This document shows positions 4,040-63,608 of a stretch of DNA of 64,000 bases, in pieces. Positions within the stretch are counted from its first letter, which is position 1; each line of letters opens with the position of its first letter. The stretch comes from Podarcis filfolensis (lineage: Eukaryota): the NCBI GenBank assembly GCA_964270895.1, contig OZ185453.1; one strand, 5' to 3'. The translations under genes were made by a program, and so were the position numbers. A model generated the notes under the pieces. The model ran no database searches. It was not told the origin of the DNA and was given only the letters and a program-made list of their open reading frames with translations.

Positions 4040-4885
4040 TCACTGAGACCAGAGCTGGCGCCTGCTCAGCTGGGTAAAAAAGCAGAAGGCAAAATGGAAC
4101 TGCAGCACATCGCAGATCTTGGACCAAAAGTGACCAGTAAGCCGGCGGAAAGGTGCCCATTGTGCCAGCTCCTGGTCCCACAGCTTGAGGCTTACAAAGC
4201 CCAGGCAAGAGACCAATCCTAGCACCAGGATCCAAGCCGACCGGGCATTACCCAAATGTCTCTGCGCCTTCAGTGCTCTCCAAACAATTATAAATATATG
4301 TCCACTCAATGCCAGCTCAAAGCCTTGGGGGTGAAGCAATGCCAGAACATAACTCGTCAGTGAAGCTGCTTCCATGGCCAGGAAAGTGCCTGGTTGCCAC
4401 CCGTGCTCCAGAAAGTGACACCAGACAACACCCCAAGCAAAAATTGGCAATGTCAACCACTGATCTAAGACAGCTGCCCAGTGACGCTGTGTCCAGAGTC
4501 GCACCCATTGTACAGGCCCATATGCAAGCGCCATAAGGGCAAAGACCTCCTGGAGGTAGCATGCCTGACCTCTCTCGTCACCTGAAGGCAGCCAGTGCCA
4601 GCCCAGAAAGATGTAGGCCAAGTTGACTAAACAATTGGCAGGCATAGCCAGTACGGGAGGCAATCCTGACACAGTTGGTTCAGCATAGTACTCGTACCCA
4701 ACTTCCGTGTGAACACCGTCAAAGACTCCTGAAGCCACAAGTCCCACACACAGCAGGAGACCTCCAGACACCAGCAAGAGTGGTTCTCTGCCTCCTGGTT
4801 TCCTCACAGTCCTTTCCAAAGTTCTGGAGGGTTCTTCCTGAATGACGGCCGAACTGCTCCTGCAGCAACTGTTCTGCTGTAACAT
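4040..4885 (-). CDS. TMEM187: Transmembrane protein 187 (single coding exon, 281 aa from the first in-frame ATG)
   Basis: The translation contains VGYEYYAE, LAMPANCLVNLAY, YGPVQWVRLWTQ, VLDQWLTLPIFAW, ALLHPQGFE and LTGHFWSKICDVLQFHFAF, all matching TMEM187. The track start at 4924 is a GTG; the first ATG is at 4885. The gene is head-to-head with HCFC1 as in human. Confidence 0.93.
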   Translation of the reverse strand: MLQQNSCCRSSSAVIQEEPSRTLERTVRKPGGREPLLLVSGGLLLCVGLVASGVFDGVHTEVGYEYYAEPTVSGLPPVLAMPANCLVNLAYIFLGWHWLPSGDERGQACYLQEVFALMALAYGPVQWVRLWTQRHWAAVLDQWLTLPIFAWGVVWCHFLEHGWQPGTFLAMEAASLTSYVLALLHPQGFELALSGHIFIIVWRALKAQRHLGNARSAWILVLGLVSCLGFVSLKLWDQELAQWAPFRRLTGHFWSKICDVLQFHFAFCFFTQLSRRQLWSQ

Positions 4886-5574
4886 GTTGCTTGTTTTGGC
4901 AAAAGCCTCCCAAATGCAATTCACAGGTGGTGCGAGGCAGGCTTCTGAGCCTGGTGTTTTCCTATCCCAGTGTGGACTTTGATTCTCCTTCCCCTACTAA
5001 CAGCACAAAAAAGGCGGAGTGAATGGGCATTCATGACCAAGAGGGACAGCTGTGCTCTTATCTGGCAAGTTTAATGTATTATTGGCCTTTTCTCTTCTTC
5101 ACTCCACCCCTCCCCTTTCCCCCCAGAGCAGAGATTGGTGCCTGTGTAGAACTACTTACATGCATAGGCCCTGTCGGTTTCCTTGGCAGCCGCTCCAGTC
5201 ACGCTCCTTCCAGTGAATGTGGTTATGAAACAGCTGCAGCGGCAGGATTGGCTGCTGGTGACATCACGGCACAGCGGGGGTAAGGTTGCTTCCTTCCCAA
5301 GGTCTTGTGTTTTGTAACCATGGGGACAGCAGCTGCCAGCCTCTAGGTGGTCCCTTGGGCTAGGCCTGCAAGACATCCTGTAGCTGGATCTTTACTGCAG
5401 AGGCATTGCTCCCTGCGCCTTTAAAAGAACCTCTACAGCACCCGTGTCAGTTCTTCAAAACGACATAATACAAAACAAAACAACCCACCACACAAAAGTA
5501 CCGAGTCTAAATATCATTCAGGAAGTGTTTGGTTATCAAGTTTCTTTGGATATGAGGGCAGCATTAATGAGGAA

Positions 5575-13399: not shown

Positions 13400-39295
<25,896 letters not shown>

Positions 39296-40895: not shown

Positions 40896-41131
40896 TCCAT
40901 GTGCTTGGGAAGAGTAGCCTGGGATATGATCCAGCTCTCCCAAGTGCTAGGCTGTGTCATCCAGAGAACAAAGGTCTGCCTTGGGATCCAGCTCCAGAAG
41001 CTGTGTGCTGCAGCCTTGCCAAATGTCCTTGGGGCTGTTCTGTGGGGTTGCACTTTCACCCTTCGGGATTGCAGAGCATGAAGAGCCCACCCCTTAGACA
41101 GAAGGAATCTCCCCATCTGTATTTGGTCAGA

Positions 41132-44100
41132 TCAGCAGCTACACCTCTCTCTGGTTGCCCCTTCTGGTGGCCTGGTCTCCAGGTGAACTGAGTCCGGTTG
41201 TGGCTCTTCAGGTACCCTCCGCTGAGGTGAAACAAAAAGAAAAGTGGTGAGGGGGCAAGTGGTTGATGCAGATGGGCAGAGGGCATGAGATGCAGGCTGT
41301 TGGGAAGGACTTTGTCTTATAAGAAAGTTGAAAGCTGGGAGAGGTGTTTTTGTTTTTAGGGATAAAAGCAATCACAAAGGTATGTGGTCTGTCGGGGCCT
41401 TATAAGGGCAGGGCTGAAAATGAGGTTTCTTACATTCTTTAGTACGGCCCGTATGGCCCACTCAAACACCTCCTGCACGTTGGTGGCTTCCTTGGCGCTG
41501 GTTTCAAAGTATTTGGCTTCATGAAGCTTGCTCCACATTTCTGCTTCCTCAGAAGACACCTGGACAAAAACAGGGCTTGGGCATACTCTGCTCTCTTCCC
41601 AATTCCATCTGCAGCTCTTAATCAAAAAGCTTGTGGTCTTTTTAGTGTACATAATGAGAGCAAATCTTTAAGATAATATAATTCTTCCCCAGATACCAAA
41701 TTCTACATCTCTGCTCGACAATTATGCCAAAGTCCTCTGGTGAAGCTGTTCATTAGGATACAATATTCCCTGAACTTTCTGTCCACTCCCCGTCTCCTTG
41801 AGTCGTTGCAAAGAGTTCTTACAGCCCCCTAACAGAACCCCTAAAGAGTTCTGACCCCTAACTACTCCAACCCAATATGTCTGAGAGCCATACAGGATGT
41901 GGACTTGTGCCCTGCGCATGGCTTCATATGGAGCCCTACCCAGTGGCAGACTTTGGGCTTTAAAATTTCAGCAGTGCACTGTGCAATGCCAAAATCTGGA
42001 GGGTGGGGGTGGCGCCTCTCGCCTTCCGCTGTTTGCTATTGTTGCAGGGCCCCCTTAGCTTGGCAGCCAGTGTGGGTGAACCAGTGGCACTCCCCTAAAT
42101 CCACCTCTGCCCCACCTCACGGTTCTCCAGGTCCATCTTGTTCCCAATGACAGCAGTGGGGAAAGTGGGCTCTTCCTCTGGCTCAATCTGCAACAGGAGC
42201 TGCTTGTGCCACTTCTCCAGGGCTTGGAAAGAGCTGACGGATGTGACATCGAAGACGAGAAGGCAGCAGTCTGACCCCCGGTAGAGGGCAGTCCCCAGTG
42301 CTTGGAACCTTTCTGTACCAGCTGTGTCCCAAATCTAGGTGCAAGAAGGGATAGAAGCTGAGACCTTGATTTCAAGACATCCCTGGGTCCTTGGTGACTT
42401 GCCTCCATTAATCTTGGTTCTCACAAAGGTTAGCAAGCATAGGTTTTGTCGTCTGGGGGCATCAGGGGATACCATGCCAAATGATGGTGTGGACTAGAGT
42501 CTCTTGTTTCTTTATTCAATTGATGTTCTGGATTCTTCCACCATGTTTGACCAGGGTTGAGTGGCTGCCACAATTCTGCCAACAGCGAACTAATCTACAC
42601 ATCAGAATGTATATAATACCAAATGGCTATAAAGAGATGGAGAGCTGAAGGGGAGCAGCTTTCTTGAACCCCATCTCCCCAGCTACATTGCTGGGAGTGC
42701 AGAAGAATGATCCATACTTATACATTTCAGGTGCCAGCTGCCCATTGTGACTGGCACCCAGAAAACGAGTGCTGTGGTGTGCTGTTTTGCCATAAAAGTT
42801 GGCAATCTTGGATTAAACCAGCAGCCAGAAAAAGTACTGAATTAGATGGGGACTGCAGCCCTGTCATGTTGAATGTTGCTTCCTATGATTAGTGGAAACT
42901 GACAATTGTGCAAAATGAGAAACCACAGGAATATGCTTCCCACAAGCTGCTGAATTCAGCTTTGTCACAGAACTTGGGTCTGCGTGGTGCAGTACTGTAC
43001 ACGGACACGACTACTTTGCTATATGGGTTAGAAGCCTTTTCTCAAGCCAAATTGGCTGCTAGCATTGTAAAGGATCTTTGGGGTGGGGGGGGGCCTATCT
43101 TGGTACATGCACTTTGATCAGGAGTGTTTGCTGTAAAGGTGCCTTTTCTGCCATGCTCTTGATTTTTTTTTCTTTTGCTTTTTTGAATGGATGGTGTTTA
43201 ATTTTGCCCTGTTGGTATGGCACTGGCCATCATTATTGTCTATGAATTGATAAAACTTTGCATGGAACAATTGATAACATGATCCCAAAGAATGATCTGA
43301 ACACATGTGGTGTAAATTCTTCTCAGCTTGAGGCTAACCTGGTCTAGCTTTGTAAGTTTTTGCATAGATAGAAGATCACTTTGGAAGCCATATGGTAAGC
43401 TCCTTACAGGAAGGGCCAAGTGTAGGTGCGTTTCGTTGACCTTGCAGCCCAAGGGAGAATTGTGTTAGTTCATGAGAGTTGGGCCACTGCATATTTGGGA
43501 CTGCAGCAATATTGGAATTTCAGTTTTTTAGTTGTGCATATTGCTTCTGTACAAATCGGGGAACAAGAAATGGAAATAAGAATTCAGCATTGTCATTAAC
43601 ATTAATTCTAGAAGGGAAAGGGTGTTTGCTTTAACTAAGAACTGATTTTTAGCAAATAGCTAGAGTCCACGTTGTAATATGCTCGTGGCACCGCCCCCCC
43701 CCCCCCCGGGGCATGTCTCATGGTGACAGGCTTTAGTCCACAAATGCCTGTATCTTATTGACTCTCTTAAGGCTGCCACAATAAAGCTAAAACAAGGCAC
43801 TTGTAACGAAACATAGCAGATTTGGGGTGCTCATACTGAGGGGGCCAGAGGACCCCTTTTCTAGAACATTCTGTTCCATTTTCCTGTATTTTATTTGCCA
43901 CCACAATTGTCACTGAGCACAATCGTCAATCCACTTGCCCATTTTAGATTCTCTTCCTTACACACAAACCTTTAAATATTTTCCTGAAATAGGTGCTTGT
44001 ACAGAAATTGGATCCCTGCTACTGCTCCCTCCATCTTGTGCATGAAGGGTGCCATTCTGTCCACATAAGGCACATATAGGATAATTTTAGACCTGGCGTG

Positions 44101-46523
44101 GGGAACTTGTGGCCTCCAGGTGGTGTTAAGGCTCCCTCCAGTCTCAGCCAGCATGGCCAATGGCTTAGGGATTATGGGAGCTGGAAATGGAGTAGGTTGC
44201 TAAAATTGCCCTAGGCTGGAGCACAGGGTTTTTTTAATGGGTAACATGGGATGAGCTTACGGGGCGATCTTTGCCCAACAGTGAGCCTCTGCTGAGCCTA
44301 CCTGCACGGTCAGTTTGCGTCCATCAATGTTTACTTCCTTGCTGAGGAAATCTGCTCCAATGGTGGCTCTGTAGCGACTGCTGAAGCGGTTGTTAACATA
44401 CTGGTTCATCAGGGCAGATTTGCCCGCCCTGCGGGGAACGGAGAAGGGTTGACATTTTAAATTTGGAGGTCTAGTCGGTAACCTCCCCCCCACCCCGCCG
44501 CCTCATCAACCAGCACAGGGCTGCAGAGGTGGAGCTGATTCTCTGCTCCTGAACGGCCTCTTGCACACATGCACACAGCCTTGTGATAAAGCCTTTTTGG
44601 TGGCAGCAGTGGGGAATCCCACGGTAAGATGGCGAAGGCCTTTTGAGTAGCAGTCACTGGGGCACAGCAGCAGGACGGGAAGGTCTGGTGATTTGCTTGT
44701 CGCCTTCTGAGGAATATCTAGTTGGCTACTGTAGGAAACACGCTGCGTGAGGCTCAGTTGGCCTTTTGAGTACAAAGGTTTGAAAAAGGCATAAGGAATG
44801 CCTGATGCAACTCCAAAGGCAGAATAAGTCATCTTGGTAAAACATGCTTAAAATCAAACAATGGCAAAAGCATATCTTGCATCAAAATGCTTTGGCATTG
44901 CATGTACAAATTCTCCAGAAGCCTTTTCTGATGGTGCCCTTTTTTTACTTGGGTCACTTTTGTACAAAGCTTTGTGTTTGACTGATTTTTGTCTTAATCA
45001 TTTCAAACAACTGACATGGTTTCAAAATGATACTCAGTGCTTTGCATGCACTGTGTCTGGCAGTGTTTGAGCCCTACTCTTCTTGTATGTTTTTCTTCAC
45101 ATTTGGTAGATAAAGGTTAAACCTAACTATTTTACTTTTTGGCATAAAAGGTAAATGAGAAATCTTAAATCCTCATTGCATTGGACAGTTGTATGCATTC
45201 ATAATATCTTAAACACATACTAAGGCCCCTTTTGAGTTTAGATACAGATAATGGAAATAACCAAATTATTTTACTCAATACATAAAAACTACACTATGTT
45301 TAAATAATGGTTATAAAAAGTTGAAGGTGAGTGTTAATTATAATTATACAGTAAGGTTTATTACTACACTGCCATAAAGCTGTGGTTACTTAATAAATTA
45401 GTTGCAACAGCAGCTGCTACCAGGCTCTTCAGAGTCAGGTTGATGGGGGAAGGTTAAGCAAGCACATTTTTCTGAGTATTTTGATGTACAGGTGTTTTTG
45501 TTAACACTTGTGAAGTTATGCTAATTTTCCAAGCATGCTGGACTAGAGGGGAAGCTGAATAAAAATGCAGTAAGTTCTCATGTTCCATTTAGCTCCCCAT
45601 GACTAGCAAATGCAGACTTGCAGCTTGACCCTGCACCTGTCTACTCAGAGGTAAATCCCACTGAGTTCAAGAGGGTTGTACTCCTGCAGTCTAAATTATG
45701 CAACATATTTAAAATGGCAAAATAATGTGAAGAGAACAAATCACAGTTGTGCATAAAACATACAGGCTGCAGGTTTTTCTTTTCTTAAAAAGCACCTTTT
45801 TATTGCATCGATGCTCTCCGGGTTCAGGCAATGGTAATACCACTGTGTCCATAGGATAATAGTCACTTGACTTGGCCTCTAGTTATTTGGTGTTGCCTCT
45901 TCCATCTGCTTTAATTCTGGGAACAAACAGCTGGTCTAATACAGCTGCGCCCCACAAAATTGTCCTGTTCTCAGCTGCCTGTGGTACACACGTGGTCCCA
46001 CTTGCTGCAGGTACTTTAAAGGACTTTGAAGGAGGTGGGACAGGAGAGCGGCGTGCAGCGCGCCGGGATCTCGCTGCCCGTGCGAAGCAGAGACTTAGTA
46101 GGCGCTCGGGGAGCGAATCAAGAAGACTTCTTCAAGTGGGCGCCTCGCTTCCCAGCCTGGGCTACAGAGGATACCGCGAGGATGGTTGCGGAGGCAGCAG
46201 AGCCTCGCGGAAGTTTCTCCCCGCGCGCGTTGACCGGGCTGCACCGGACGGGCTGCACCTGCCCCTGCCCCTCGCGGCGCCGCCCCCTCCGCCCCGTCCA
46301 CCTGCCGCCTTAACCCCTCGGCTGCCAAACGGGGACAGGATCCCCGGAAGCCTTCCTCTTCCCGCCAGCCGGGAGCCCCGACACCCGCTTAGCCGCCGGA
46401 GCCCGGCCGGGGGGCGAGGAGGGGCCAGCTCTCCCGGCGGGCCTGCCTTCCCCATCCAGGCGCCCCTTGTGCTTACCCGGAATTGCCGATCAGCAGGATC
46501 TTGAGGTGGGAACGTCTGAACAT
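41132..46523 (-). CDS. RAB7A-like small GTPase (divergent Rab7 paralogue), 5 coding exons, 202 aa
   Basis: complement(join(41132-41221,41434-41559,42116-42334,44302-44428,46477-46523)). Exon sizes 47/127/219/126/90 have the RAB7A phases (RAB7A exons 127 and 219 are identical in size). Protein: [202 protein letters not shown]. Open frame, canonical splice sites, CXC prenylation motif. Confidence 0.9.
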
Positions 46524-46950
46524 GGGGCGTCTGCGCCAGAACCTGCGGAGAGACGGGCGGGTGAGGGCGGCGGCGGCGGCGGAGCAGCAGCCCTACGGGA
46601 GCAGCTCTGGAGCGGGAGCCTCCGTCGAGACCCCCCCGCGGCCAGGCGTGTGGGGGTCCCCTGCTCAGTCCGCGGGGCGGGCGCCCGGACCTCGGCCCCG
46701 AAGCCCGGCCCCGGCCGTGCGCCCCCCCGAGCCACCTCGGCGCGGCACAGCCTCCCTCAAACTGCCTCCGAAGAAGGAAGGGCGCTGCTTGGGGCTCCTG
46801 GCAGCTGCTGGCTCTCGCCCTCCTGGCCGGCGCGCCTTCCTGCCGGGCTTCTCGGCGCCGGGGAGGAGGAAGGGCGCGGGGCTGCGCCTTCCGGCCACGC
46901 TTTCAGGTGAGGCCGGTGGGATCCGGCTTGTGCCCAGGCGAAGCAAGGAT
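46040..46950. promoter_or_regulatory. CpG island over the RAB7-like first exon and promoter
   Basis: Very high CpG density with GC boxes around the ATG at 46523. Confidence 0.75.
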
Positions 46951-49549: not shown

Positions 49550-50560
49550 AGACACGCGAGGCCTCCTTCGCATGGAGTCGCCCCCCAGCTCCGAAACGTG
49601 GCTCTGAAGTAAGTAGGAGAGAGCAGGGGGTCCCTCCCCACCTCCCCCAGATTGGCAGCAAGATTATTTGGATGCCTCGGCACCTTGCTGTGGTATATAT
49701 TTGAAACGAGCCATGTGGTCCTAGAGGGAAAGCACACGCACCGCCCTCTCTCTCCAGAGCTCACCTGGGACGGGGGCGGCAGCTGATGGGTTTTGCTGCC
49801 AAGGGGGATTCCTCCCCTGACGTACGAGCGGGGCATCCTAATAGCGGTGACATCACGCAGCCGCCTTTGGGGTCGTCCCTGCTCCCCGTCGCCCCTCGGC
49901 CCTTCCGCTCAGCAGTCCCTCAGGAGGCAGCGGGGAGCCACCCGAGTCAGGAAGGCTTCCTGGGAGCGTTTAAATGCTTTGTGCCTCATTGCTGCCCTTT
50001 TCTTGTCACGATCACTGTTCTGGGATTCCTGCTGCCGATCTCTGGGCCGGATCACGGCAGATGTAGGGTTAACAAATGGAAACAGAGGAAAAGGAACAAA
50101 TCAGGGTCTTCGCCCCCCCACGTGGGGAAAGGGTGGGGCTAGTGTCAGGTGACTTGGGCAAATCATATGACCAGCAGTTCCCTACTTTGTAAATTTTTAA
50201 GTTTTGGGGGGTGGGCGTTGTACGTGGTTTTATGCTAGTTTCCCGCGGACAGCGGCAGCGCGTTTCGGGACTCTCCCCTCCCCTCTCGGGGTCGGATCCT
50301 GGGACGGGCTGACTCTGCTGATCCAGAAACACCTTCGCGCCCCTACAGGGATCGCCGCTGGAGGAAGCAGCGAGGATGGAGTTGGCGTCGCTCTTGAGCT
50401 GGCATGGACGCATCTCCCGAGAGCTGGACGCCGTGGTGGATTTCTGGCTTCAGCATTCGCACGACGAGGAATACGGGTGATGGATCGCTGCCTGTCTATT
50501 CATCTAGGCCCCCCCCCCGTCGCCCCAGGGCCAGCCAGCGTGGGTTGTGGCTGAGGGGGC
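49550..50560. promoter_or_regulatory. CpG-rich RENBP promoter / 5' region
   Basis: CpG-rich segment ending at the first coding exon. An acceptor-like cgcgcccctacag| at 50348 just upstream of the ATG suggests a 5' non-coding exon. Confidence 0.5.
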
Positions 50561-53500
50561 ATTTGAACACGGCTCTCCCGCAGTCCAGTCCTGTACCTAC
50601 CACACTGACTCCCTCTCACGACATGGGGGGGAGGTTATGTTTATAGTGATGCTATACAGGCCATTAAGGAAATCGACCCAAATGGGGAGGGGGAAGAGGG
50701 TATGTGAAACAGGGGAGCCCTTCCCAGAAAGGGGGGGGGGGTGGAACATACCACTGAGATGCGAGGAGATACTTCCCCTTCCCTCCCCTCACGTGGCCTG
50801 AGGCAGACAAATCTACCCTCTAATGCAGGGGGGAAGGGACCTCTGACTTGGCAACCCTTTTCATTTAGCCCACTATTTTCGGGAGGCTGTGCCCACCTGA
50901 CTCACACGTGACGTCATGCATGACTTGAAAGCAACCACCCGGAGCTTAGGGCTCCCTGTTGCTCCTTGGACCAGCATGGATGACATTCCACTGGGAAATT
51001 CTCCTCTGCAAGCTTCATGGAAACAAATGTGAGCTGTGGGCAAGATGCTGCTGTCCCCAGATATGCTCTCCTTCCATTTCTGTGGGCTTGCGGAGAAGAA
51101 TGTCCTGGCAGATGGTGCTCTGTGAAGCAGATCTGCCTGCCCTCTTAAAGGCATTCCACGTTTTCTGCGCCTGCTTTAGCTCTAACTCCTGACGCTGCCA
51201 GAGGCAGCTTCCTGTCTTACTTCTCGCAGGCCAGGGCTGGGGGAATCTCCAAAACTCCTTGGACTCCAACTCCCACCCCCCCCCCCGGCCATTTGCTGTG
51301 CTGGCTGAGGGGCTATGGGGAGCCCCACTCAGCCACGCCCCACGACAAGTTCCTCTTTAGTCAGTAGTTCTCTGCCCGGCCTGCTTTCATCCTTTCCTCT
51401 AGGAAATTGTGCCCCCCCTCCTGGTTCTCACCCCTGCCTCTTCTTTCTCTCTAGGGGGTTCTTTACATGTCTGGGCCAGGATGGGAAAGTTTATGATGAC
51501 TTGAAATATGTTTGGCTGCAAGGCCGGCAGGTAGGGGTCCTCAGGGGCTGTGGATTTTGGAAATTTTTTTAGATTTTCTGTTGGGATCACCTTTGTGTGG
51601 TTGGGGCTGGGGTGGGAAATGAGGCTGGGGAGGGCCAGCTTCTCTGAAGCCAGCCAAGGCTTGATTGGAACCTGGCTTGCCTGGAGTTGGCCTCAGAATC
51701 TGGTTTCAGTGCTGGCCTTAAAGCTTGGAATGAACAGGTAAAGCAAATTTAATAAATAAATGGCACAAGTCTCTCTGAGCATGTGCAGAATGCCTCAACA
51801 CTGCAGCTCCCCCATCAGTCCCCCATATTGGGAACGTTTTTGCACGAGGAATTTCCAAGCCAGCCTGAGGTCCAGCACCTGTCTCCTTAAGAACAGGCCA
51901 GGCCTGCGCATCACTGTGGAGAGCCACGCTCACAGCTCATACCCTGAATGGCAGGCATCAGTGCCGGGGCTTAAGCCAAGGAAAGGAAAGGTGTGGCCCT
52001 CCAGGAACGGATGGAGTCCAATTCCCATCATCCCTGACCACTGACCTTGCTGGCTGGGGCTGATGAGTGCTGGAGTGAGCAAGTGTCCTCATCCCTGGCT
52101 GAGCCAAGGCAGATGTCTGCCATGAGACTAGAGGGCCCAGGTTACCTCTCCATCCCTTCCCAAACAGGTGTGGATGTACAGTCGGCTGTATCGAAAAGTA
52201 CCAAGATTCCGGCGCCCTGAACTCCTGCAGGCAGCCCGAGCAGGTAACTTCTTCCACCTTGTGTACAGAAGGGATGGGATTTGGGAATGAAGGCAAAGAA
52301 GGGATAATATTGGGTGGGCAGACAGAGGTCTGTGGTGTGTGGACTGGGGCAGGGAATTGAGATGAGGGCTGAGAGACTCTTGAAAGTTCTGATACTTTGG
52401 AATGGTGGTGGGATTATAGGGGTTGTCCCCCCACAATTAATCATCATCACAATCTAATCAGTTAGCCTTTTCTGTTAACTGAGTACTCCTTGTATGGTAA
52501 GCCATTCCGCCCCCCAAGAGTGAGCCTGAGGCAGAGAGATTTTGCCTAAGGCCACCTACTGCGCCTGTGGGAGAGGGGCAATTTGTACTGGGGCTTCCCA
52601 ATTCATAGCTCAATCCCTGCTTGTGATCAGTTGGAGAAAGTGTAAAAAGTTGGTGGGGGGTCTTGGCCCAAGTGCTCTGGGTATTTGGTTGCCAGTAGCA
52701 GAGAGGGGCAGAGCTGCCTTCCTCCAAATCTATTTCTTTCTCTGAGGTGGGGAGTTCCTGTTAGAGCATGCGCGAGTGGCCCCACCATCACAGAAGTGTG
52801 CCTTTGTCCTGACTCGTGATGGGCGCCCTGTGAAAATCCAGCGCACCATTTTCAGCGAGTGCTTCTATGTCCTTGGGCTGGATGAACTTGGACGAGCAAC
52901 TGGGGAACCTCGTTACCAGGTGAGGTCAGGAGAGCTGGATACAGATGTCCTGATTGCCTGCCTGCCTCCTTATATGAACAGTGGGCATCTAAACCTGTTT
53001 ATCCTCCTTCTCTTCTCCCTCTGATTATTACCTCAGCAAAAATACCCTTTCCCCAAAGCTATGGTACAGCTCCTAGCACATGGCTGATAAAACCGCAGCT
53101 GTAGGGTTGGGCCCAGAGTGGAGAGACCAGCTCATTTTACCTCATGGTGCTGCGGTTGAGGCACGTCTTCCTGTCTCTATGGATACTGGAGTTCCGTTGA
53201 TAGAACTAGAAGAAGAATAGCCATCATCTACATAGAGGAAGAGGCTGGTCAGCTGGTTGAGTCTGCTCTTGTGTAGGGTTAACCCTTGTCCAAAGTACTG
53301 GTCCATGGGAGGTGCTGTGAACCTCTGCTCCCCCAGGAGGCAGTGATGGCCACCAACTTAGATGGCTTTAAAAGAGGATTAGACAAATTCTTGGAGGAGG
53401 CGAGGGCTATCATTGCTCACTAACCATGATGGCTCTGCTCTGCCTCCGTAGAAGAGCGCTTAAGAACGGAAGAGGAGCCCTTCTGGATCAGACCAAAGGC

Positions 53501-56500
53501 CTACTTCATCCTTATCCTCTTTCCCACACTAGCCAACCAGATGCCTTCAAGCAACACATGAGAGCGACCCTTTTCTCTTGGGTAGTGGAACTCTACTATA
53601 ACGCATATCTCTGTTGGTTGGAGGAGTGCTGAGTGGTTGGTTGTTGGTCATCTCTCTGGCTTCTTCACTTGCTCTCTCTCACCCTCCCTGCCGATCAGCC
53701 GTGATGAAGCCTGAGCAGTGAGCAAATGAGTTTGGCCAAGGCCTGCTGAGTCCCTTGGAGAAGAGGGAAACCTGACTCCAGGCATGGATGTTGTGGGAGT
53801 GAGACCAGCCCTAGCCTTAGGTTTCCACTTGGCTAATGGGTATTTTCGTAGATTGTAACGATGTTCCTGTTGGCAGAGGGAAGCCCTGGCAATGATGGAG
53901 GCCATTGTGCACTGGGTGAGGGAGGATCCCTCTGAGCTGGGACGCCCACTGCTGGCGGGGGCAAGCCCACATGACTCCATGGCTGTTCCCATGATGCTCC
54001 TCAACCTGGTGGATCAGCTGTCAGAAGGAGATGCAGAGGCTGCAAGCCGGTTCAGTGAGCTGGGAGGCTGGTCTGCTCAGCGAATCCTCATGCACGTGCA
54101 GGTAAAGGGGTGGGAATGGTCGGCCCCCCCTGCCCCTTAGTTTTGCTTTTGTCTTCGTTTGGTATGTTTTAGAATAGAATTCTTATTTCGCTACAGAGGG
54201 ATGGTGCTGCTGTGTTGGAGAACGTTTCTGAAGAGGGTGAGGAGTTGCCAGGGTGTTTGGGAAGACAACAGAATCCTGGTAAGAAGAGACCAAGAGCCAG
54301 GATGCTTTGGGAGTCAAGTGCAGCAGCGTATATTTTGCTGAGGAATTTCATGTTAGCCAGAACCCCAGGAATCTAGATTTTTAGCAAACAAATTTCTAGC
54401 CTGTTTAGCAGTAGAGCAAAGTTTGAAAATATCTCTGTCAGACCCACAGGTTAGGGTCCTGAATGAAGAGTTGGGCTGGTGTATACATTGCACTCCATTG
54501 CTGGGAGATTTGTAGCTCTCCAGATGTTGGATATCAACTCCCATCAGCCCCAGCCAGCAGGGCCAACAGTCAGGAACGATGGGAACTGTACTCCCAGCAG
54601 CACCTCAAGGTCCACACATTCTCCAGCCCTGTATTGCACAGGATCAGGTGGTGGAACTCTGCACTGCACCACTGTAGATTGCAGGGGCCATATTTTTAAT
54701 GTAACTAGTCATGGGCTTAGCCAAGAGGGGACAGGGAGGGGCAGCTGCCCCCAAAATCAATAAAAATCAATAAAACTACATAGCTAACTGAGGTTCTGCC
54801 CCCCCCAAACAAAAATCCTGGCTATGCCCAACTAGTTCAGATTTTGCCAGCCTGGTATGTCCTGCCCCCACCATAAGACATAGGGGCCGAGGCGATTTTG
54901 ACATCCCCCCAATGTCAGCCCCCTCAATTTTCAGAGGATGTTTTGCTCTGCCCCCTGGTTCTTGCAATGTTGCACAACGTTGCATCAGGTCCCCTCAATC
55001 CTCTGGAGAAGCCGGCGCCTCTGCACCAGAATGTTTTGGACTACAATTTCCATCAGCCCCAACCAGTATGGTTTTGCTGGCTGGGGCTGGGGCTGGGGGG
55101 GTGTTGGATATTCCAAAGTATTTGGAGGTTGCCAGGTTGGTGGGGGTTGGCACGTCAGGGCTACTGTTAGCCGTGCTCACTTGCTACGTGCAGGGAGTCT
55201 TTACATGGAGCCTTCAAAAGTACTACACCGTTCTCTGCAGTCTGAAGTGGTGCAGCCTAGATAGCTACCCTCTCATACTGCAAAGATTGGCACCTAGACC
55301 CTGGCACATATCCTTACTAGCATCCCTGCCTCCACAGCCCCCTTGCCCCTTGTGACAGTCTTCTTTCTCCCATCCCCAATTTATGCAAGAGAGAGAGAGG
55401 CTGCTCAGCTGGGAAGCAGGAACAGTTTCACAGAGTCCCCATCCTGCCACCAGCAGGTGCAAGCCAGTGGCGTGTAGGGGGCTCCATAAAACTGCCTGGC
55501 TGAGCAATGGCAGATGTATGCTTCTCAACCAAGCAGTTTAAAGAAGTGAAGGGAGGAACAAGCTGTATTGGCCCCTCTCCGATGCAGCATGTTTCTCCCT
55601 CTGCGCCGGTTTGAGGGCAAAGTGGGATGGCAGCTTCACTCAGCAGGATATCGCTGGTGAAACTGCCGCTGCCCCTGAGTCCCTCTGCCTCCAGTGCCCG
55701 GCTGCAGCTTGTTTCTCCCTTGGCGCGCTGGGCACTGGTGGCTAAGGAACTGAGGAGGAGGCTGTTTCACCTGTAATATACCACTGAGTGAAGCTGCCAT
55801 TGCTGTCTGCCCCTCATACCGGTCCTGGGCGATGTATTGATGCATCACCCAGGCCTACTGGAGATGGAGAGGAAAGGTGTATCAAAAGGAAAATGAATTG
55901 ATAATGATTTTTATATATTAGTAACTTTGTATTACTGTAACATTTCTGTATGTGTGTTTTTGTAATATTTTGTGTATGTTGTCTGTTGTTATGTCAAATT
56001 TCTGTCTACTTATTAGAGATATTTTATATATATTAAGTGATATAGAAATAAAATAACCAATCTGCCTTGGGATGGGGTGGGAGCCATTTTTTCCTGTCAA
56101 GGGCTGCATTTCCTCAGCATTCTCTGCCGGGAGCTGTGTGCCAGTGCTGAGTGGATGGATCACCCTCCCTCCTTCCCTCCCTCCGCCCCCTGCATGGAAT
56201 TAGTCTGAGGGCAGTAGGTTGCCTGCCCCAGAACTCTGAGCCAGCACTGGGGTGTTTCTTCTCCATTTTTGTTTCTAAGGCCATGCGATTGAAGCAGGCT
56301 GGTTCCTGCTCCGCTACGCGCAGCGCCAGCAGGACTCGGACCTCGTGGCCCAGGCTGTGGAGAAGTTCATGAAGGAGCCATTCCGTCTGGGCTGGGACCC
56401 TGAACATGGTGGACTCTTTGCCTTCCAGGATGTGGATGGCCTCTGCCCAACGCAGGTACAGAAGCTTGGACCCTAAAGCCTACATTCACCATGCATTTGA

Positions 56501-59500
56501 CAACTGCCCTCCTCCTGGGATCTCTTGGGTTGTTCCCTCCCACCCCCCAACTTTCCCCTCTTTCTTCTTCAGTTAGAGTGGAAAATGAAGCTTTGGTGGC
56601 CACACACAGAAGCCATGATTGCATTTCTGATGGGCTTTGCTGAGACTCGAGACCAAGAGCTCCTGGAACGCTTTGTCCAAGTGGCTAAATATGCCTTTGC
56701 CAAGGTAAGCTTGAAGGCTGGCCATGGAGGGCAGGGGGTGCCATTAAGTTAGAAGAGAGGTGGTGAGATGAGGTTTGAAGAAAGTGCATTTCCTGGTCAA
56801 AGGCTCTGGGGGCTGGGAAAGAAGCGGTGCCCGAGACCTTGCAGAGCGGGGTGCTGCTTGGGTGCAGCCTAAGGCAGCTTCCACTGGTCAATATGGTGAC
56901 CGTCAGCTTCCTAACCTATGGGAGTGGCACCAGGAACCTAAAACCCCTCCATAGCTCACATCTCACACTGTAGATCGTCTTATAATCTGATATGCATATT
57001 GTTTCACCATCTTTGCTTGTTCTTCTCTTAGTTCAGTGACCCACAGGCAGGTGAATGGTTTGGCTATCTGAGCCAGGAGGGCAAGGTGGCTCTCACAATC
57101 AAAGGAGGGCCATTCAAAGGTAAAGAGGCTGTGTGGTGGCTTAATTGTGACGGTTGGGGAGGGGGGGCAGTAATAAGATTTAATCTGAGCAAGAATGTCA
57201 GCAAGGCACACCTGCAAGGCCTTTTTCCAGTACTGAAGCTCAGTGGTAGAATGCAGAGCGCAGTGTAACAAGAGTGGCTCTAGAATGTGTGTTCACTTTG
57301 CTACTGATAACCAGCACCCACTCACAGCTACCTAGAATTAGCAGTGCGGGCAGAAAGAGACAGCAGCATATACCTGCCTCAAGTAAATGCTCTCTTGGGA
57401 TCACCTGCTGCTTTTGGAATAAAATGACATGCTTCCCCTATGACCAGTCTGCCCTTATGCATCCATAGGGCTTTGAGGGGGAAACTACTACTGCCCTGTT
57501 TGAAGTGTTAATGCTTCTATAGCACTATCAGCATGCAAAACTTGTCAAGGACATTGAGGGAGAATTGCAATATCCCCATTAGGACTGCAACTTTTTCAGG
57601 TTTTACAACTATTACTCTTGTTTTCATAGGCAACCAACGTGCTCTTGATTTAAGTGCTATTTGTTTATAACACATCTAGATTATTTATGAAAGCTAAAGA
57701 TAGCAGGCCCCATGGCTCAACTCCTCACACAGGAAGGAATGCCTCTTTTTTAATTAACTTATTTATTGATATTTGTTAATAGATACTACAAAAACACATA
57801 CCCATTACAAAGTACATTTTATAATATACTAAGACAGCTACTTAGTCTAAAAAAGAACGAAGTCAGAAAGGAGAGACCTGAAAAACGAAAAAGGGAGAGA
57901 AAAGGGGAAGAAAGGAAAAACTACAGAACTATAGAAAAGAGTAAGAGGACTTCTGTCTCTCTGTCCTGCAGCTATATATAATATTTATTCCTTAAAATCC
58001 AACCATCCTATCTTCTATATACCAGTATTTTTTCAGTCTTCAGATTCTGACAAGTTCATTTTCTCTTTCATGCAAAAAGTCCTTAAGAAATTTCCAATCC
58101 TTAACAAATGTAATGATTTTTCTCTAATTAAAACATGTTAACTTTGCCATCTCAGCCAGATCCAATAATTTCATCAGCCATTCTTCTATAGTGGGTAGGA
58201 CTATCTTTTCATCTTTGTGCATATAGCAGTCTTGTTGCTGTAGTCATATATTGGAGTAATCAGGAATAAAGTTAAGGAACTACTGGTGGAATTTCTGGAA
58301 AAGGAGGCTAGAAATATGGAAGCAGAATTGGATAAAATTTATAGAATCAACACACTACGAAAAAATAAACTTCCAAGAGATGTCTTGGTCCAATTTGTTA
58401 GGATAAAAAACACCTAGAGACGATACAGATTTGACTGTGCTGAAAGAAATTCCGTCTAAGATACTACATAAAAGAAAAGAATACAGCTTAACAGATAAAC
58501 TTAAACAGAAAAGAATCCAATTTAGATAGGATGCAGCAGAAGGATTCTGACTTAATACAGTACAGAGAGCAAGAGAATTTGTGGAGAGATTTAAATTTGA
58601 TATTAAAGATATGCAAATGGAGGAGACTTAAGATGCAGCAATGGGAGCATCAAGTATAGAGGTGACAAATTAACTTGACTGACTATGGATTACAAAATTT
58701 TAACATGGAATATAAATGGGGCAAATGCTTCACAAAAGAGGAAAAAGGTATTTTATCACTTGAATATAGTGAAATTAGATTTAAGATGTTCACAAAAAAC
58801 ACTTATTAGGAAAAAGGACACAAAATATTTGATTCAAAAGAAATTAGGGGAAGAATGTATTTCTGCAGGAACAAAGAAAAGAAATGGAGTTATATTGTGT
58901 ATATACATTCCCAATTTTGTCCAAAATTGATTCTTTTGGATGAACAAGGTAGATTTATTGGGGTGGAAATTAACATTTGTGGAAAAATGATTTTGGATCT
59001 AGGTATATATGCTCCAAATGATAACAAATCAGCTTTTTATAAAGGATTCATGGATAGACTGAGGGATTATGCATATGAAAACTGGTGCCTTATGGCAGAT
59101 TAGAATGCTCCCCCCACCACAGACAAGGCAGGAGTCAGAGAAATGTATTTTGCAGCCTGTTGTCTAATGTGGATAAAGGAGTGGTTGACATGGAGAAGGG
59201 AGAGGACTTTAGAAATAGGACATGACCTAAGGTTTGGATGGCATGGATATCTGTGATATAATAAAGTTAAAGTTAATGTAGATTTTAAAAATCACTGTAT
59301 TTGAACTGCCATATTAAGAATTTGGAATAAATGCAAACCTAGGTTGCACCAAAAGACACCTGTATGGATTTCACCACAAGAAGTTTTTCACAGAAAAGAG
59401 ATGACAGGCAAAGGGAAATGGATAACATACCACAAAATAATGGAAACACCTCAGTGAGATGGGGGAGCCTCTTGAAGCAAAGCAAGTATGCTTCCCCCAA

Positions 59501-60308
59501 AAAACTATTTGTGTTGTTCATGCACAAATTATGCAATCCTAACCATGTCTACGCAGAAATAGCTTATATTGAGTTCAGTGGTGCTTACTCCCAGGTCAAT
59601 AGGGTTAGGCTTGCATCTTAAGATTTGCCACACTGGAATCCTCTTAGCCTTGGTGGTATTTTTTCTGATCTGTAATATGCATTCTGCTAGCTAAACTTCC
59701 ATTGTTGTGATTTTTTAGTAACCTGCAGGCATTCTGGAGAGATTAGACCAGCCTTCCTCAGCCTTGGCCCTCCAGGTGTTTTTGGCCTACAACTCCCACG
59801 ATCCCTAGCTAGCAGGACCAATGGTCAGGGATGCTGGGAATTGTAGTCTCAAAACATCTGGAGGGCCAAGGTTGAGGAAGCCTGGATTAGACAAATGACT
59901 GCTTGACTTCCTTTTCAACCTTCTTTTTACCATTTCCCTCATTTTTATGAAGTTTCTCCACAGCTGTTCAAATGAGCCAAGAGCTGCCCCTGATGGTTCC
60001 AAATCTACTTCCTGTTTGGGTTGCTTCTGCCACTAAACCTTGCTGGCTCACTTGCTTAAGACACATGACTTGCAATACTTTAATGCCCCCACACCAAGCT
60101 GTGGTTAGGGAAATGCAGTAAAAGAGGGTGTTTGGGAGACAGGATCCCTGTCTTGTTTCATTTATTTAAAGCATTTTTATCCTGCCCCCTTACATTCCTC
60201 CCCATCTCTATCTTTGCAGGCTGTTTCCATGTCCCCCGTGCGCTCTATATCTGTGAAGAAATTCTGGAATCGCTCATAAGGGAAACTCAGTTGACCAGCC
60301 AGGGATGA
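50376..60308 (+). CDS. RENBP: N-acylglucosamine 2-epimerase (renin-binding protein), 10 coding exons, 405 aa
   Basis: join(50376-50476,51455-51530,52168-52243,52747-52919,53877-54101,54197-54278,56280-56455,56573-56704,57032-57119,60220-60308) = 1218 nt, in frame. Motifs [74 protein letters not shown] and KGGPFKGCFHVPR are present. Confidence 0.95.
53340..53580. mobile_element. CR1 3' fragments (one sense, one antisense)
   Basis: gtgatggccaccaacttagatggctttaaaagaggattagacaaattc (CR1 ORF2 end) followed by taagaac..ctggatcagaccaaaggcc (reverse CR1 tail). Confidence 0.6.
54710..54829. mobile_element. Short hAT-like MITE
   Basis: Termini catgggcttagcc / ggctatgccc, flanked on both sides by aactagt. 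Confidence 0.55.
57748..59466. mobile_element. Rearranged L1-clade LINE in the last RENBP intron (minus-strand 3' end joined to plus-strand ORF1/EN/post-RT pieces)
   Basis: Minus 57748-58250: T-tract, 3'UTR and [19 protein letters not shown]. Plus 58250-59100: ORF1 ([20 protein letters not shown]) and APE endonuclease ([18 protein letters not shown]). Plus 59105-59440: post-RT ORF2 ([22 protein letters not shown]). Confidence 0.8.
59749..59884. mobile_element. 136-bp hairpin hAT MITE
   Basis: Near-perfect inverted arms cagccttcctcagccttggccctccag / ctggagggccaaggttgaggaagcctg, with a perfect 8-bp TSD GATTAGAC (59741-59748, 59885-59892). Confidence 0.9.
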
Positions 60309-62376: not shown

Positions 62377-63608
62377 AACCCCAAGGTGGTTGTCACCGAT
62401 GGAAGCGAAAGCTCAGAAAAAGCTCAATATGGAGGCTAAATGGCCGAAATATTGGGAAATTTTGGAACAAGATGGAGATAGATTAAAATTGCAGAGTTTT
62501 GAGAAACTAAAGAATAAAGTGCGAGATTGGCTCCATTATTATCAGATAATGGAGGCATATAATCTGGACAAGAAAATTGGCTTCCAGGTGGAAAAATCAA
62601 AACTAGAAACAGAACTGCTAGATCCCAAAACTAAGATACTTTCAAGAATGTATAACTTGCTGTTAAAATGTAATACACAGGATGAAACAGTTAAATCTGC
62701 AATGATTAAATGGGCACAAGATGTTGGACATGACATAATGTTTGCTGACTGGGAACAGTTGTGGACCACAGGTATGAAATTCACGGCATGTAATGCCTTA
62801 AGAGAGAATATTATGAAAATGATTTATAGGTGGTACATGACCCCGGTCAAGCTTGTGAAAATTTATCATTTGCCTGATAATATATGTTGGAAATGTAAAG
62901 AAAATGAAGGCACATTCTTTCACCTTTGGTGGACGTGCCCAAGGATTAAGGCTTTCTGGGAGATGATATATAATGAACTGAAAAAGGTATTTAAATATAC
63001 CTTCTTGAAGAAACCAGAGGCCTTTCTTCTGGGCATAGTTGACCAATCGGTGTTAAAGAAGGATAGAACTTTCTTTATGTATGCCACAACAGCAGCAAGA
63101 ATACTTATTGCAAAATACTGGAAGACACAAGATCTACCCACTTTGGAAGAATGGCAGATGAAGGTGATGGACTGTATGGAATTGGCGGAAATGACCGGCA
63201 GGATCCGAGATCAGGGGGAAGAGTCAGTGGAAGAAGATTGGAAGAAATTTAAAGATTATTTACAGAGATATTGTAAAATTAATGAACTTTAGAATAATGT
63301 TGGATTAAAATTAAGAGGTTTCTAGCTGTAATGGGTTAAAAGAATATGAAAAAATGGGTTTATAAAAGTAAAATTTCAAGATCACAATAATTTAAGAATA
63401 AAGATTTGGGTAGAATAAAGAGGGAAACAAATTGCTGAGCTAATAAATTGAACTGGAATACAAAAAAGAGAGGTATGAGGAGGTCCAAGAAACAAGTAAA
63501 TGAAAAATAATGTGATGGAAAGACTTTTTTTTCTTTTTTTCTCTTTTTCTGTTTGTTTTTATTTTTTGTAATGTAAAAATCTTAATAAAAATCTTATATA
63601 AAAAAAAA
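62377..63608 (+). mobile_element. Young 5'-truncated L1-clade LINE (ORF2 C-terminus, 3'UTR, poly-A)
   Basis: Uninterrupted 300-codon ORF with the CWKC..HLWWTC zinc knuckle, an AATAAA plus A-tail, and a perfect 15-bp TSD tcaaaagtactgttg (62362-62376, 63609-63623). Confidence 0.9.

Follow-up and report, generated by a model that had tools for sequence, protein, structure and literature searches.

Can a Rab7 GTPase do without the glutamine that places the attacking water for GTP hydrolysis? The question is raised by a 64,000-nucleotide stretch of the Podarcis filfolensis genome (assembly GCA_964270895.1, contig OZ185453.1; hereafter the window), the minus strand of which carries a Rab gene with threonine at that position. 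An initial annotation, made from the letters of the DNA, had described the product as a slowly hydrolyzing, kinase-insensitive Rab7 with Thr65 at the catalytic Gln and Ala70 at the phosphorylated serine. Late endosomes and lysosomes have RAB7A as their master switch, and the Q67L and S72 variants of RAB7A serve as standard tools and are linked to disease. We argue that the window gene belongs to an old and little-noticed vertebrate paralogue of RAB7A, Rab7c.

We rebuilt the gene on the minus strand (46523-41132) as five coding exons encoding a 202-amino-acid (aa) product that ends in CSC. The exon borders are GT-AG throughout, and the open reading frame (ORF) and the splice sites are intact. 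Contigs of four public sequencing runs were aligned to 41100-46600, two of the runs being RNA from a closely related species. The RNA contigs contained all four joints (41221/41434, 41559/42116, 42334/44302, and 44428/46477), with GT..AG on the strand of the gene, and the joints were seen only in the RNA runs and in neither DNA run. The Rab7c gene is thus transcribed and spliced as modelled. Its parts are the following:

46477..46523, minus strand: coding exon 1, starting at M1 and ending two bases into the codon of G16, with a GT donor after it and the RNA joint 44428/46477; H6 (the His corresponding to RAB7A position 8) is encoded here, as is the initial half of the P-loop, where N14 lies at 46484-46482.
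44302..44428, minus strand: coding exon 2, the remainder of the P-loop and switch I, bounded by RNA joints (Pfam Ras, 5.5e-10); AGKS with S20 at 44418-44416, YRATIG at 44373-44356, and R36 at 44370-44368.
42116..42334, minus strand: coding exon 3, from switch II to G4 (NKMD at 42142-42131; Pfam Ras, 2.2e-20), with RNA joints 42334/44302 and 41559/42116.
42314..42316, minus strand: codon ACA of Thr65, aligned with the catalytic Gln of RAB7A (Gln67; Gln61 in Ras).
42299..42301, minus strand: codon GCA of Ala70, opposite Ser72 of RAB7A.
42284..42286, minus strand: codon CTC of Leu75, opposite Phe77 of RAB7A.
41434..41559, minus strand: coding exon 4, G5 (ETSAK at 41505-41491) and the last helix (Pfam Ras, 3.9e-07), with RNA joint 41221/41434.
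41132..41221, minus strand: coding exon 5, the hypervariable tail with the CSC prenylation motif at 41143-41135 and the stop codon TGA at 41134-41132.

The minus strand reads GAC ACA GCT GGT ACA GAA AGG TTC CAA GCA CTG at 42328-42296, and the rebuilt gene kept the codons and the numbering that the initial annotation had given for T65 (ACA, 42316-42314) and A70 (GCA, 42301-42299). In a search of the PDB sequences, exon 3 aligned without gaps to residues 61-133 of RAB7A at 94 bits, in comparison with 75 bits for RAB9A, and this alignment sets T65 opposite Q67 and A70 opposite S72. Exons 2-4 each matched Pfam Ras. Among the features expected of the Rab family, the protein carries G1, the switch I Thr, G3, G4, G5, and the C-terminal double-Cys motif; it lacks the catalytic switch-II Gln (WDTAGQE), having Thr65 there. 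The motifs that had been reported as intact, GNSGAGKS, YRATIG, NKMD, and ETSAK, were all recovered, as were T38 and DTAG, with G1 interrupted by intron 1 (GNSG|AGKS). With G1, G3 bar its Gln, G4, G5, the switch I Thr, and CxC in place, Rab7c is predicted to be a working, prenylated, nucleotide-binding Rab. The G4 motif varies among relatives: it is NKMD in the window, NKTD in most Rab7c, and NKID in RAB7A, and Met is outside the four residues most common at that position in the clade.

Orthologues were reached from the exon 3 ORF by way of a 122-aa Naja fragment (93% identity), which led to full-length proteins; the exon 3 search also returned Xenopus and fish fragments, all with DTAGTERF. When the Naja fragment was used as query, 119 of the best 120 of 511 matches had DTAGTERF, and the sole exception, low in the list, was a canonical Rab7. 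The squamates with the Thr form among the matches listed were Pogona, Varanus, Anolis, Sceloporus, Gekko, and Hemicordylus, and members of the matched clusters added skinks, Elgaria, Phrynocephalus, and many snakes. Outside squamates, the matches listed included frogs, a salamander, caecilians, a lungfish, bichir, gar, paddlefish, many teleosts, and two sharks. Across the clade, G18, K19, T38, D61, G64, N123, K124, D126, S152, A153, and K154 are invariant, as are E66, R67, F68, L71, and G72 of switch II. Squamates encode this Thr with ACA, Xenopus with ACG, and gar with ACC, indicating that the residue has been held while the codon drifted; a change from Gln (CAR) to Thr (ACN) takes two base changes.

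The Thr proteins have a single origin in our trees. In the maximum-likelihood tree they form one clade with support 100/100 and a stem of 0.55, apart from the vertebrate RAB7A, and the order within the clade tracks the species tree, with the shark first, then ray-finned fishes, and then amphibians and squamates. When the two trait columns were masked and the Xenopus tropicalis protein NP_989167.1 was included, the clade retained an SH-like approximate likelihood ratio test (SH-aLRT) support of 99, and the state at the catalytic position changed between Q and T once. The squamate stem branch is 0.46-0.56 changes per site, suggesting a burst of change in Rab7c before the living squamates diverged. 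Separate canonical RAB7A proteins were found in Nanorana, Lithobates, Oryzias, and Nematolebias, all of which also have the Thr form, and canonical RAB7A was fetched from a lizard, a bird, and mammals as well.

The name of the clade comes from earlier work. Mackiewicz and Wyroba in 2009 used 'Rab7c' for two 'highly diverged' sequences, Danio rerio NP_001013496.1 and Xenopus tropicalis NP_989167.1 (BMC Evol Biol 9:101, PMC2693434). They placed it at the base of vertebrate Rab7a, with its own synteny and His at position 8, and considered it older than jawed vertebrates, possibly derived from the 1R/2R genome duplications; its loss from amniotes was 'assumed' (PMC2693434). NP_989167.1 has Thr and, as a member of the Xenopus cluster, is among the frog members of our clade, so the window gene is the squamate Rab7c and an amniote-wide loss does not hold. 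We thus identify the window gene, from its sequence and its place in the tree, as the squamate orthologue of Rab7c, a RAB7A paralogue that would predate the divergence of jawed vertebrates, and Thr at the catalytic Gln is by the same evidence a hallmark of this old vertebrate paralogue and not the peculiarity of one protein. The text of the 2009 paper does not contain the Gln-to-Thr change, nor the words 'glutamine', 'Q67', or 'catalytic' (PMC2693434), and in the literature searched no other paper used 'Rab7c' as a vertebrate name and none contained the string DTAGTER. As far as searched, the loss of the catalytic Gln and the other functional substitutions of Rab7c are undescribed; the family itself was named in 2009.

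Those other substitutions were found by counting residues by position in 89 Rab7c proteins against RAB7A. The differences called fixed were Q67T, T22S in the P-loop, K38R, F77L, A92S, T95S, T98A, I149A, and I169A; D16N was seen in 80 of the 89 proteins and the CxC tail in 88. RAB7A position 8 is more variable, His being the commonest residue but not fixed (42/89, including H6 of the window) and Thr the next noted (29/89). F77L was present in 88/89 proteins (Leu75 in the window), and by alignment F77 presumably stands third in the Rab hydrophobic triad. The Leu encoded at 42284-42286 in place of the triad Phe77 hints at an altered effector surface. At the switch I Lys expected of the Rab7 subfamily, Rab7c has Arg (K38R, 86/89 proteins, with R36 in the window). 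The window reads Y-R there (44368-44373), in a subfamily that is said to be strictly Y-K, and the neighbouring F31 and Y35 are kept. Mon1-Ccz1 inserts the lysine K38 of Rab7 into the Mg site, and Rab32 and Rab38, the substrates of the related BLOC-3, carry Arg at that position (PMC5216073, PMC12383261). K38R, F77L, L8H, and the divergent tail are differences at positions known as contacts of RAB7A partners, which include Mon1-Ccz1, RILP, ORP1L, and TBC1D5/15. Together, they suggest that Rab7c has a partner set differing from that of RAB7A, a change that we infer from these positions.

Taken as a whole, the data are probably best explained by a working Rab7c that hydrolyzes GTP slowly by itself and is switched off via a trans-acting GTPase-activating protein (GAP). 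Under this explanation, a single replacement in the clade's ancestor would have put Thr in place of the switch-II Gln, and Thr would have been retained since. Being short and beta-branched, Thr would not be able to position the attacking water as Gln does, and intrinsic hydrolysis would be very slow by likeness to Rap1 Thr61; on the same likeness, the 'slowly hydrolyzing' of the initial annotation is a reasonable inference. Rap1 has Thr for Gln61, this Thr61 is without a catalytic role, and the residue that Rap1GAP brings in trans is an Asn (PMC2265111). Rab7c would similarly stay on until a GAP provides, in trans, the carboxamide that it lacks, as the Gln finger of a TBC RabGAP would do. It would then be a long-lived 'on' switch, the lifetime of which is set by GAP access and not by an internal clock. 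TBC GAPs indeed insert both an Arg and a Gln in trans, with the Rab's own Gln displaced and outside catalysis (PMC5902221). The caveat attached to the initial annotation, that TBC GAPs bring their own Gln, is thus correct, and it constitutes the main uncertainty.

Several points weigh against this account. Since a Gln comes with the TBC GAP, cycling in vivo may be near normal and the substitution of little matter. The opposite effect is also conceivable: in Gyp1-Rab33, the GAP backbone and the Rab's own Gln are in contact (PMC5902221), and given this contact, Thr could weaken GAP action and leave Rab7c locked on. The structural model that we consulted contains no nucleotide, has low confidence in switch I, and is silent on catalysis. 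The spliced RNA contig of a related species differs twice from the window within exon 3, at positions that are not listed. Our trees comprised Rab7c and RAB7A, with RAB7B and RAB9 sequences left out, and the squamate protein favours RAB7A over RAB9A by 12 bits (208 vs 196). Finally, no bird, mammal, turtle, or crocodilian was among the best 120 of 511 matches; with the 2009 paper, this makes an absence of Rab7c from birds, mammals, turtles, and crocodilians suggestive but not conclusive.

The alternative that survives best is that Thr is almost neutral, the TBC GAPs bringing the Gln and Rab7c cycling like RAB7A, so that the two diverged in partners and not in kinetics. That the Rab's Gln takes no part in dual-finger catalysis (PMC5902221) agrees with this, and so do K38R, F77L, L8H, and the tail changes, which lie at partner-contact positions. 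The absolute conservation of Thr for >400 million years despite the turnover of synonymous codons indicates on the other hand that the residue itself is selected, and at two base changes from Gln it is no trivial step of drift. We consider near-neutrality unlikely, if still the explanation to be taken most seriously after slow hydrolysis with GAP-dependent switch-off.

A second alternative is that no GAP turns Rab7c off and that it is locked on as a constitutive membrane tag, its level set by abundance, exchange, or extraction, in the manner of Rab24 and Rab25, which we take to be natural Rabs that do without the switch-II Gln. The Gln in cis is lost, and as it binds the GAP backbone in Gyp1-Rab33 (PMC5902221), the loss could weaken GAP binding as well. 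However, the rest of switch II (E66, R67, F68, L71, G72) is invariant, and the switch I Thr and the motif for tri-longin domain guanine nucleotide exchange factors (TLD-GEFs) are kept, as expected of a protein that cycles. A permanently active Rab7c is for these reasons distinctly improbable.

Position 70 behaves differently from position 65. Ser is found there in sharks, fishes, amphibians, Gekko (TCT), and Pogona (TCA), and Ala in skinks, Hemicordylus, Elgaria, Varanus, Anolis, Sceloporus, Phrynocephalus, snakes, and the window. The S/A state changes twice on the tree; TCA of Pogona is one base apart from GCA, and its fellow agamid Phrynocephalus has Ala. The pattern indicates that Ala70 arose within squamates after the gecko split and reverted once, in Pogona, and is a feature of a lineage and not a hallmark of the protein. 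Fixation of A70 across orthologues, which the initial annotation had entertained, is contradicted by the Ser of fishes, amphibians, Gekko, and Pogona. Ser72 of RAB7A is the site phosphorylated by LRRK1 and TBK1 (PMC7886321, PMC11090050), and the equivalent phospho-acceptor appears to be lost in most squamates. The description 'kinase-insensitive' could thus stand at most for the majority of non-gekkotan squamates with their Ala70 but not for the rest of the clade, where Ser is kept.

The remaining alternatives concern the identity and the reality of the gene. It is very improbable that it represents a non-mammalian orthologue of RAB7B or RAB9, even if many members are named 'Rab-7b' in UniRef and one 'Rab-9A' at NCBI and the margin of RAB7A over RAB9A is 12 bits for the squamate protein. 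X. tropicalis has distinct Rab7b (NP_001096381.1) and Rab7c (NP_989167.1) genes, each with its own synteny (PMC2693434), and the CxC tail is as in RAB7A. The frog and shark members prefer Rab7, even the fungal Ypt7, over Rab9: against the PDB, frog Rab7c scored 252 bits for RAB7A and 191 for RAB9A, and shark Rab7c 242 and 181. The identity of the window protein to RAB7A is 48.5-50%. For the Elgaria orthologue (90% identical), the best PDB matches of an AlphaFold model (mean predicted local distance difference test score, pLDDT, 76) were Rab7 structures, with target-normalized template modeling (TM) scores of 0.80-0.88, and a look-alike search in the ESM Atlas gave generic Rab clusters only and no taxonomic range. 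No Rap was found among the 60 best PDB sequences, the best matches being all Rabs, and Thr is all that is shared with Rap. We also considered and rejected zebrafish rab7ba/rab7bb as the same gene: rab7a, rab7ba, and rab7bb are canonical genes with 88% identity among themselves.

A decaying RAB7A duplicate, either a pseudogene or a relaxed copy, might be suspected from the fast evolution (the frog-medaka identity is 57% for Rab7c vs 95% for RAB7A) and the long squamate stem branch. The pairwise ratio of nonsynonymous to synonymous changes (dN/dS, Nei-Gojobori) between the window and other squamates was 0.089 for Pogona, 0.093 for Varanus, and 0.118 for Gekko, and Rab7c is under purifying selection in squamates. 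With this dN/dS of ~0.1, an intact ORF and splice sites, spliced RNA, 40 invariant columns in the clade, among them those of the nucleotide-binding motifs and of the second CxC Cys (the first being nearly invariant), and a gene kept since before the split of sharks and bony fish, decay has next to no chance of being correct. An error of assembly or sequencing, or a private allele of one animal, is equally remote and nothing was found in its support, as an independent DNA sample agrees, 128 proteins fetched from other species have Thr, and Ala70 is common to skinks, a cordylid, an anguid, a monitor, iguanians, and snakes. The independent DNA sample was one of the four runs, from the same organism (X3), in which one 5267-nt contig spans 41948-46553 with 25 differences; 23 of these have listed positions, and none of the 23 is in exon 3. 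The initial annotation had named Gln in orthologues or reads as the sign of an error; for T65 we found Thr in every orthologue seen, specified by synonymous codons.

The surroundings of the gene are conserved as well. The neighbours in the window are the following:

4040-4924, minus strand: TMEM187, a single-exon ORF (Pfam, 1e-103) upstream of HCFC1.
About 21284-21733, plus strand: Kelch exon of HCFC1 (Kelch_HCF, 1e-33).
28962-31001, plus strand: large exon of HCFC1.
35874..36323, plus strand: Fn3 exon of HCFC1 (PDB HCF-1 C-terminal chain, 1e-60), the convergent downstream neighbour of Rab7c.
50322..60305, plus strand: exons of RENBP (GlcNAc_2-epim matches at 56279-56473 and 56501-56749, and exon-like ORFs), the divergent upstream neighbour of Rab7c.

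RENBP, Rab7c, and HCFC1 are in the same order in Pogona, and the convergent placing of Rab7c and HCFC1 seen in the window recurs in Pogona, Xenopus, and gar. Gar, Xenopus, Gekko, Varanus, and Pogona all share the same division of the gene into five exons. Exact matching of the Candoia and Hemicordylus proteins yielded no contig. By this shared arrangement, Rab7c appears to have stood beside HCFC1 ever since its origin before the divergence of jawed vertebrates. TMEM187 is presumably upstream of HCFC1 at human Xq28 likewise. Within the Rab7c introns, the stretches at about 41940-41999, 44131-44185, and 45638-45670 show spikes in depth (500 to 8000) in the DNA runs, along with many loose ends, and resemble interspersed repeats. 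Two ORFs resemble long interspersed nuclear elements: one on the plus strand at 58679-59100, with an endonuclease-like stretch, lies between the exon-like ORFs of RENBP at 57.0 and 60.1 kb, and one of 304 aa on the plus strand at 62378-63289 lies downstream and has no Pfam match.

The presence of Rab7c in squamates contradicts the published assumption of its loss in all amniotes, and the protein provides a natural experiment on how far the Rab cycle can lean on a Gln that TBC GAPs bring in trans. Rab7c is present in both zebrafish and Xenopus, making direct functional tests possible. The zebrafish 'triple rab7' knockouts removed rab7a, rab7ba, and rab7bb, and the 88% identity of the three to one another places Rab7c outside them. 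Orthologues are named inconsistently: NCBI uses 'Rab-7a-like', 'Rab-7a', 'rab7', and once 'Rab-9A' (Thamnophis sirtalis XP_013915178.1), UniProt uses 'Rab-7b', and no database name marks them as a separate paralogue. The conflicting names come from automatic annotation and are misleading. More tentatively, Rab7c may be a distinct switch of late endosomes or lysosome-related organelles in fishes, amphibians, and squamates that has worked for >400 million years without a Gln in cis, its hydrolysis wholly supplied by GAPs as in Rap. On this broader proposal, which we regard as possible but speculative, YR and F77L would give it another set of GEFs and effectors, most squamates would have uncoupled it from Ser72-type kinases, and its loss in mammals and birds would be the loss of a trafficking module.

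Comparison with known systems places these findings. With the Rab7c of the 2009 study, the window gene shares the gene family (NP_989167.1 being within the clade), the position-8 His, fast evolution, a synteny of its own, and an origin that precedes jawed vertebrates; that study had two sequences and an assumed amniote loss, whereas we describe an intact, expressed squamate gene (PMC2693434). Rab32 and Rab38 have the same Y-R in switch I, with Arg where the tri-longin GEFs push a lysine into the Mg site (PMC5216073, PMC12383261), but overall Rab7c is similar to Rab7 and not to Rab32/38. RAB7A is the best match in both sequence and fold and has the same G motifs, CxC tail, and ungapped exon 3; it differs in that the identity is about 49-50% and Rab7c evolves roughly ten times faster. 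Rab24 and Rab25 are, we assume, natural Rabs in which the switch-II Gln has likewise been replaced, by Ser and Leu, respectively, but they belong to other Rab subfamilies and have residues other than Thr. In the literature searched, there was no description of a Rab7-subfamily member lacking the catalytic Gln. The closest parallel in chemistry is Rap1 with Rap1GAP, in which a natural Thr occupies the position of Ras Gln61 and hydrolysis relies on a carboxamide provided in trans (PMC2265111). Rap1 belongs to another family, with a GAP of another fold and an Asn thumb, and Rab7c is a Rab by every test, so the likeness is one of functional analogy only.

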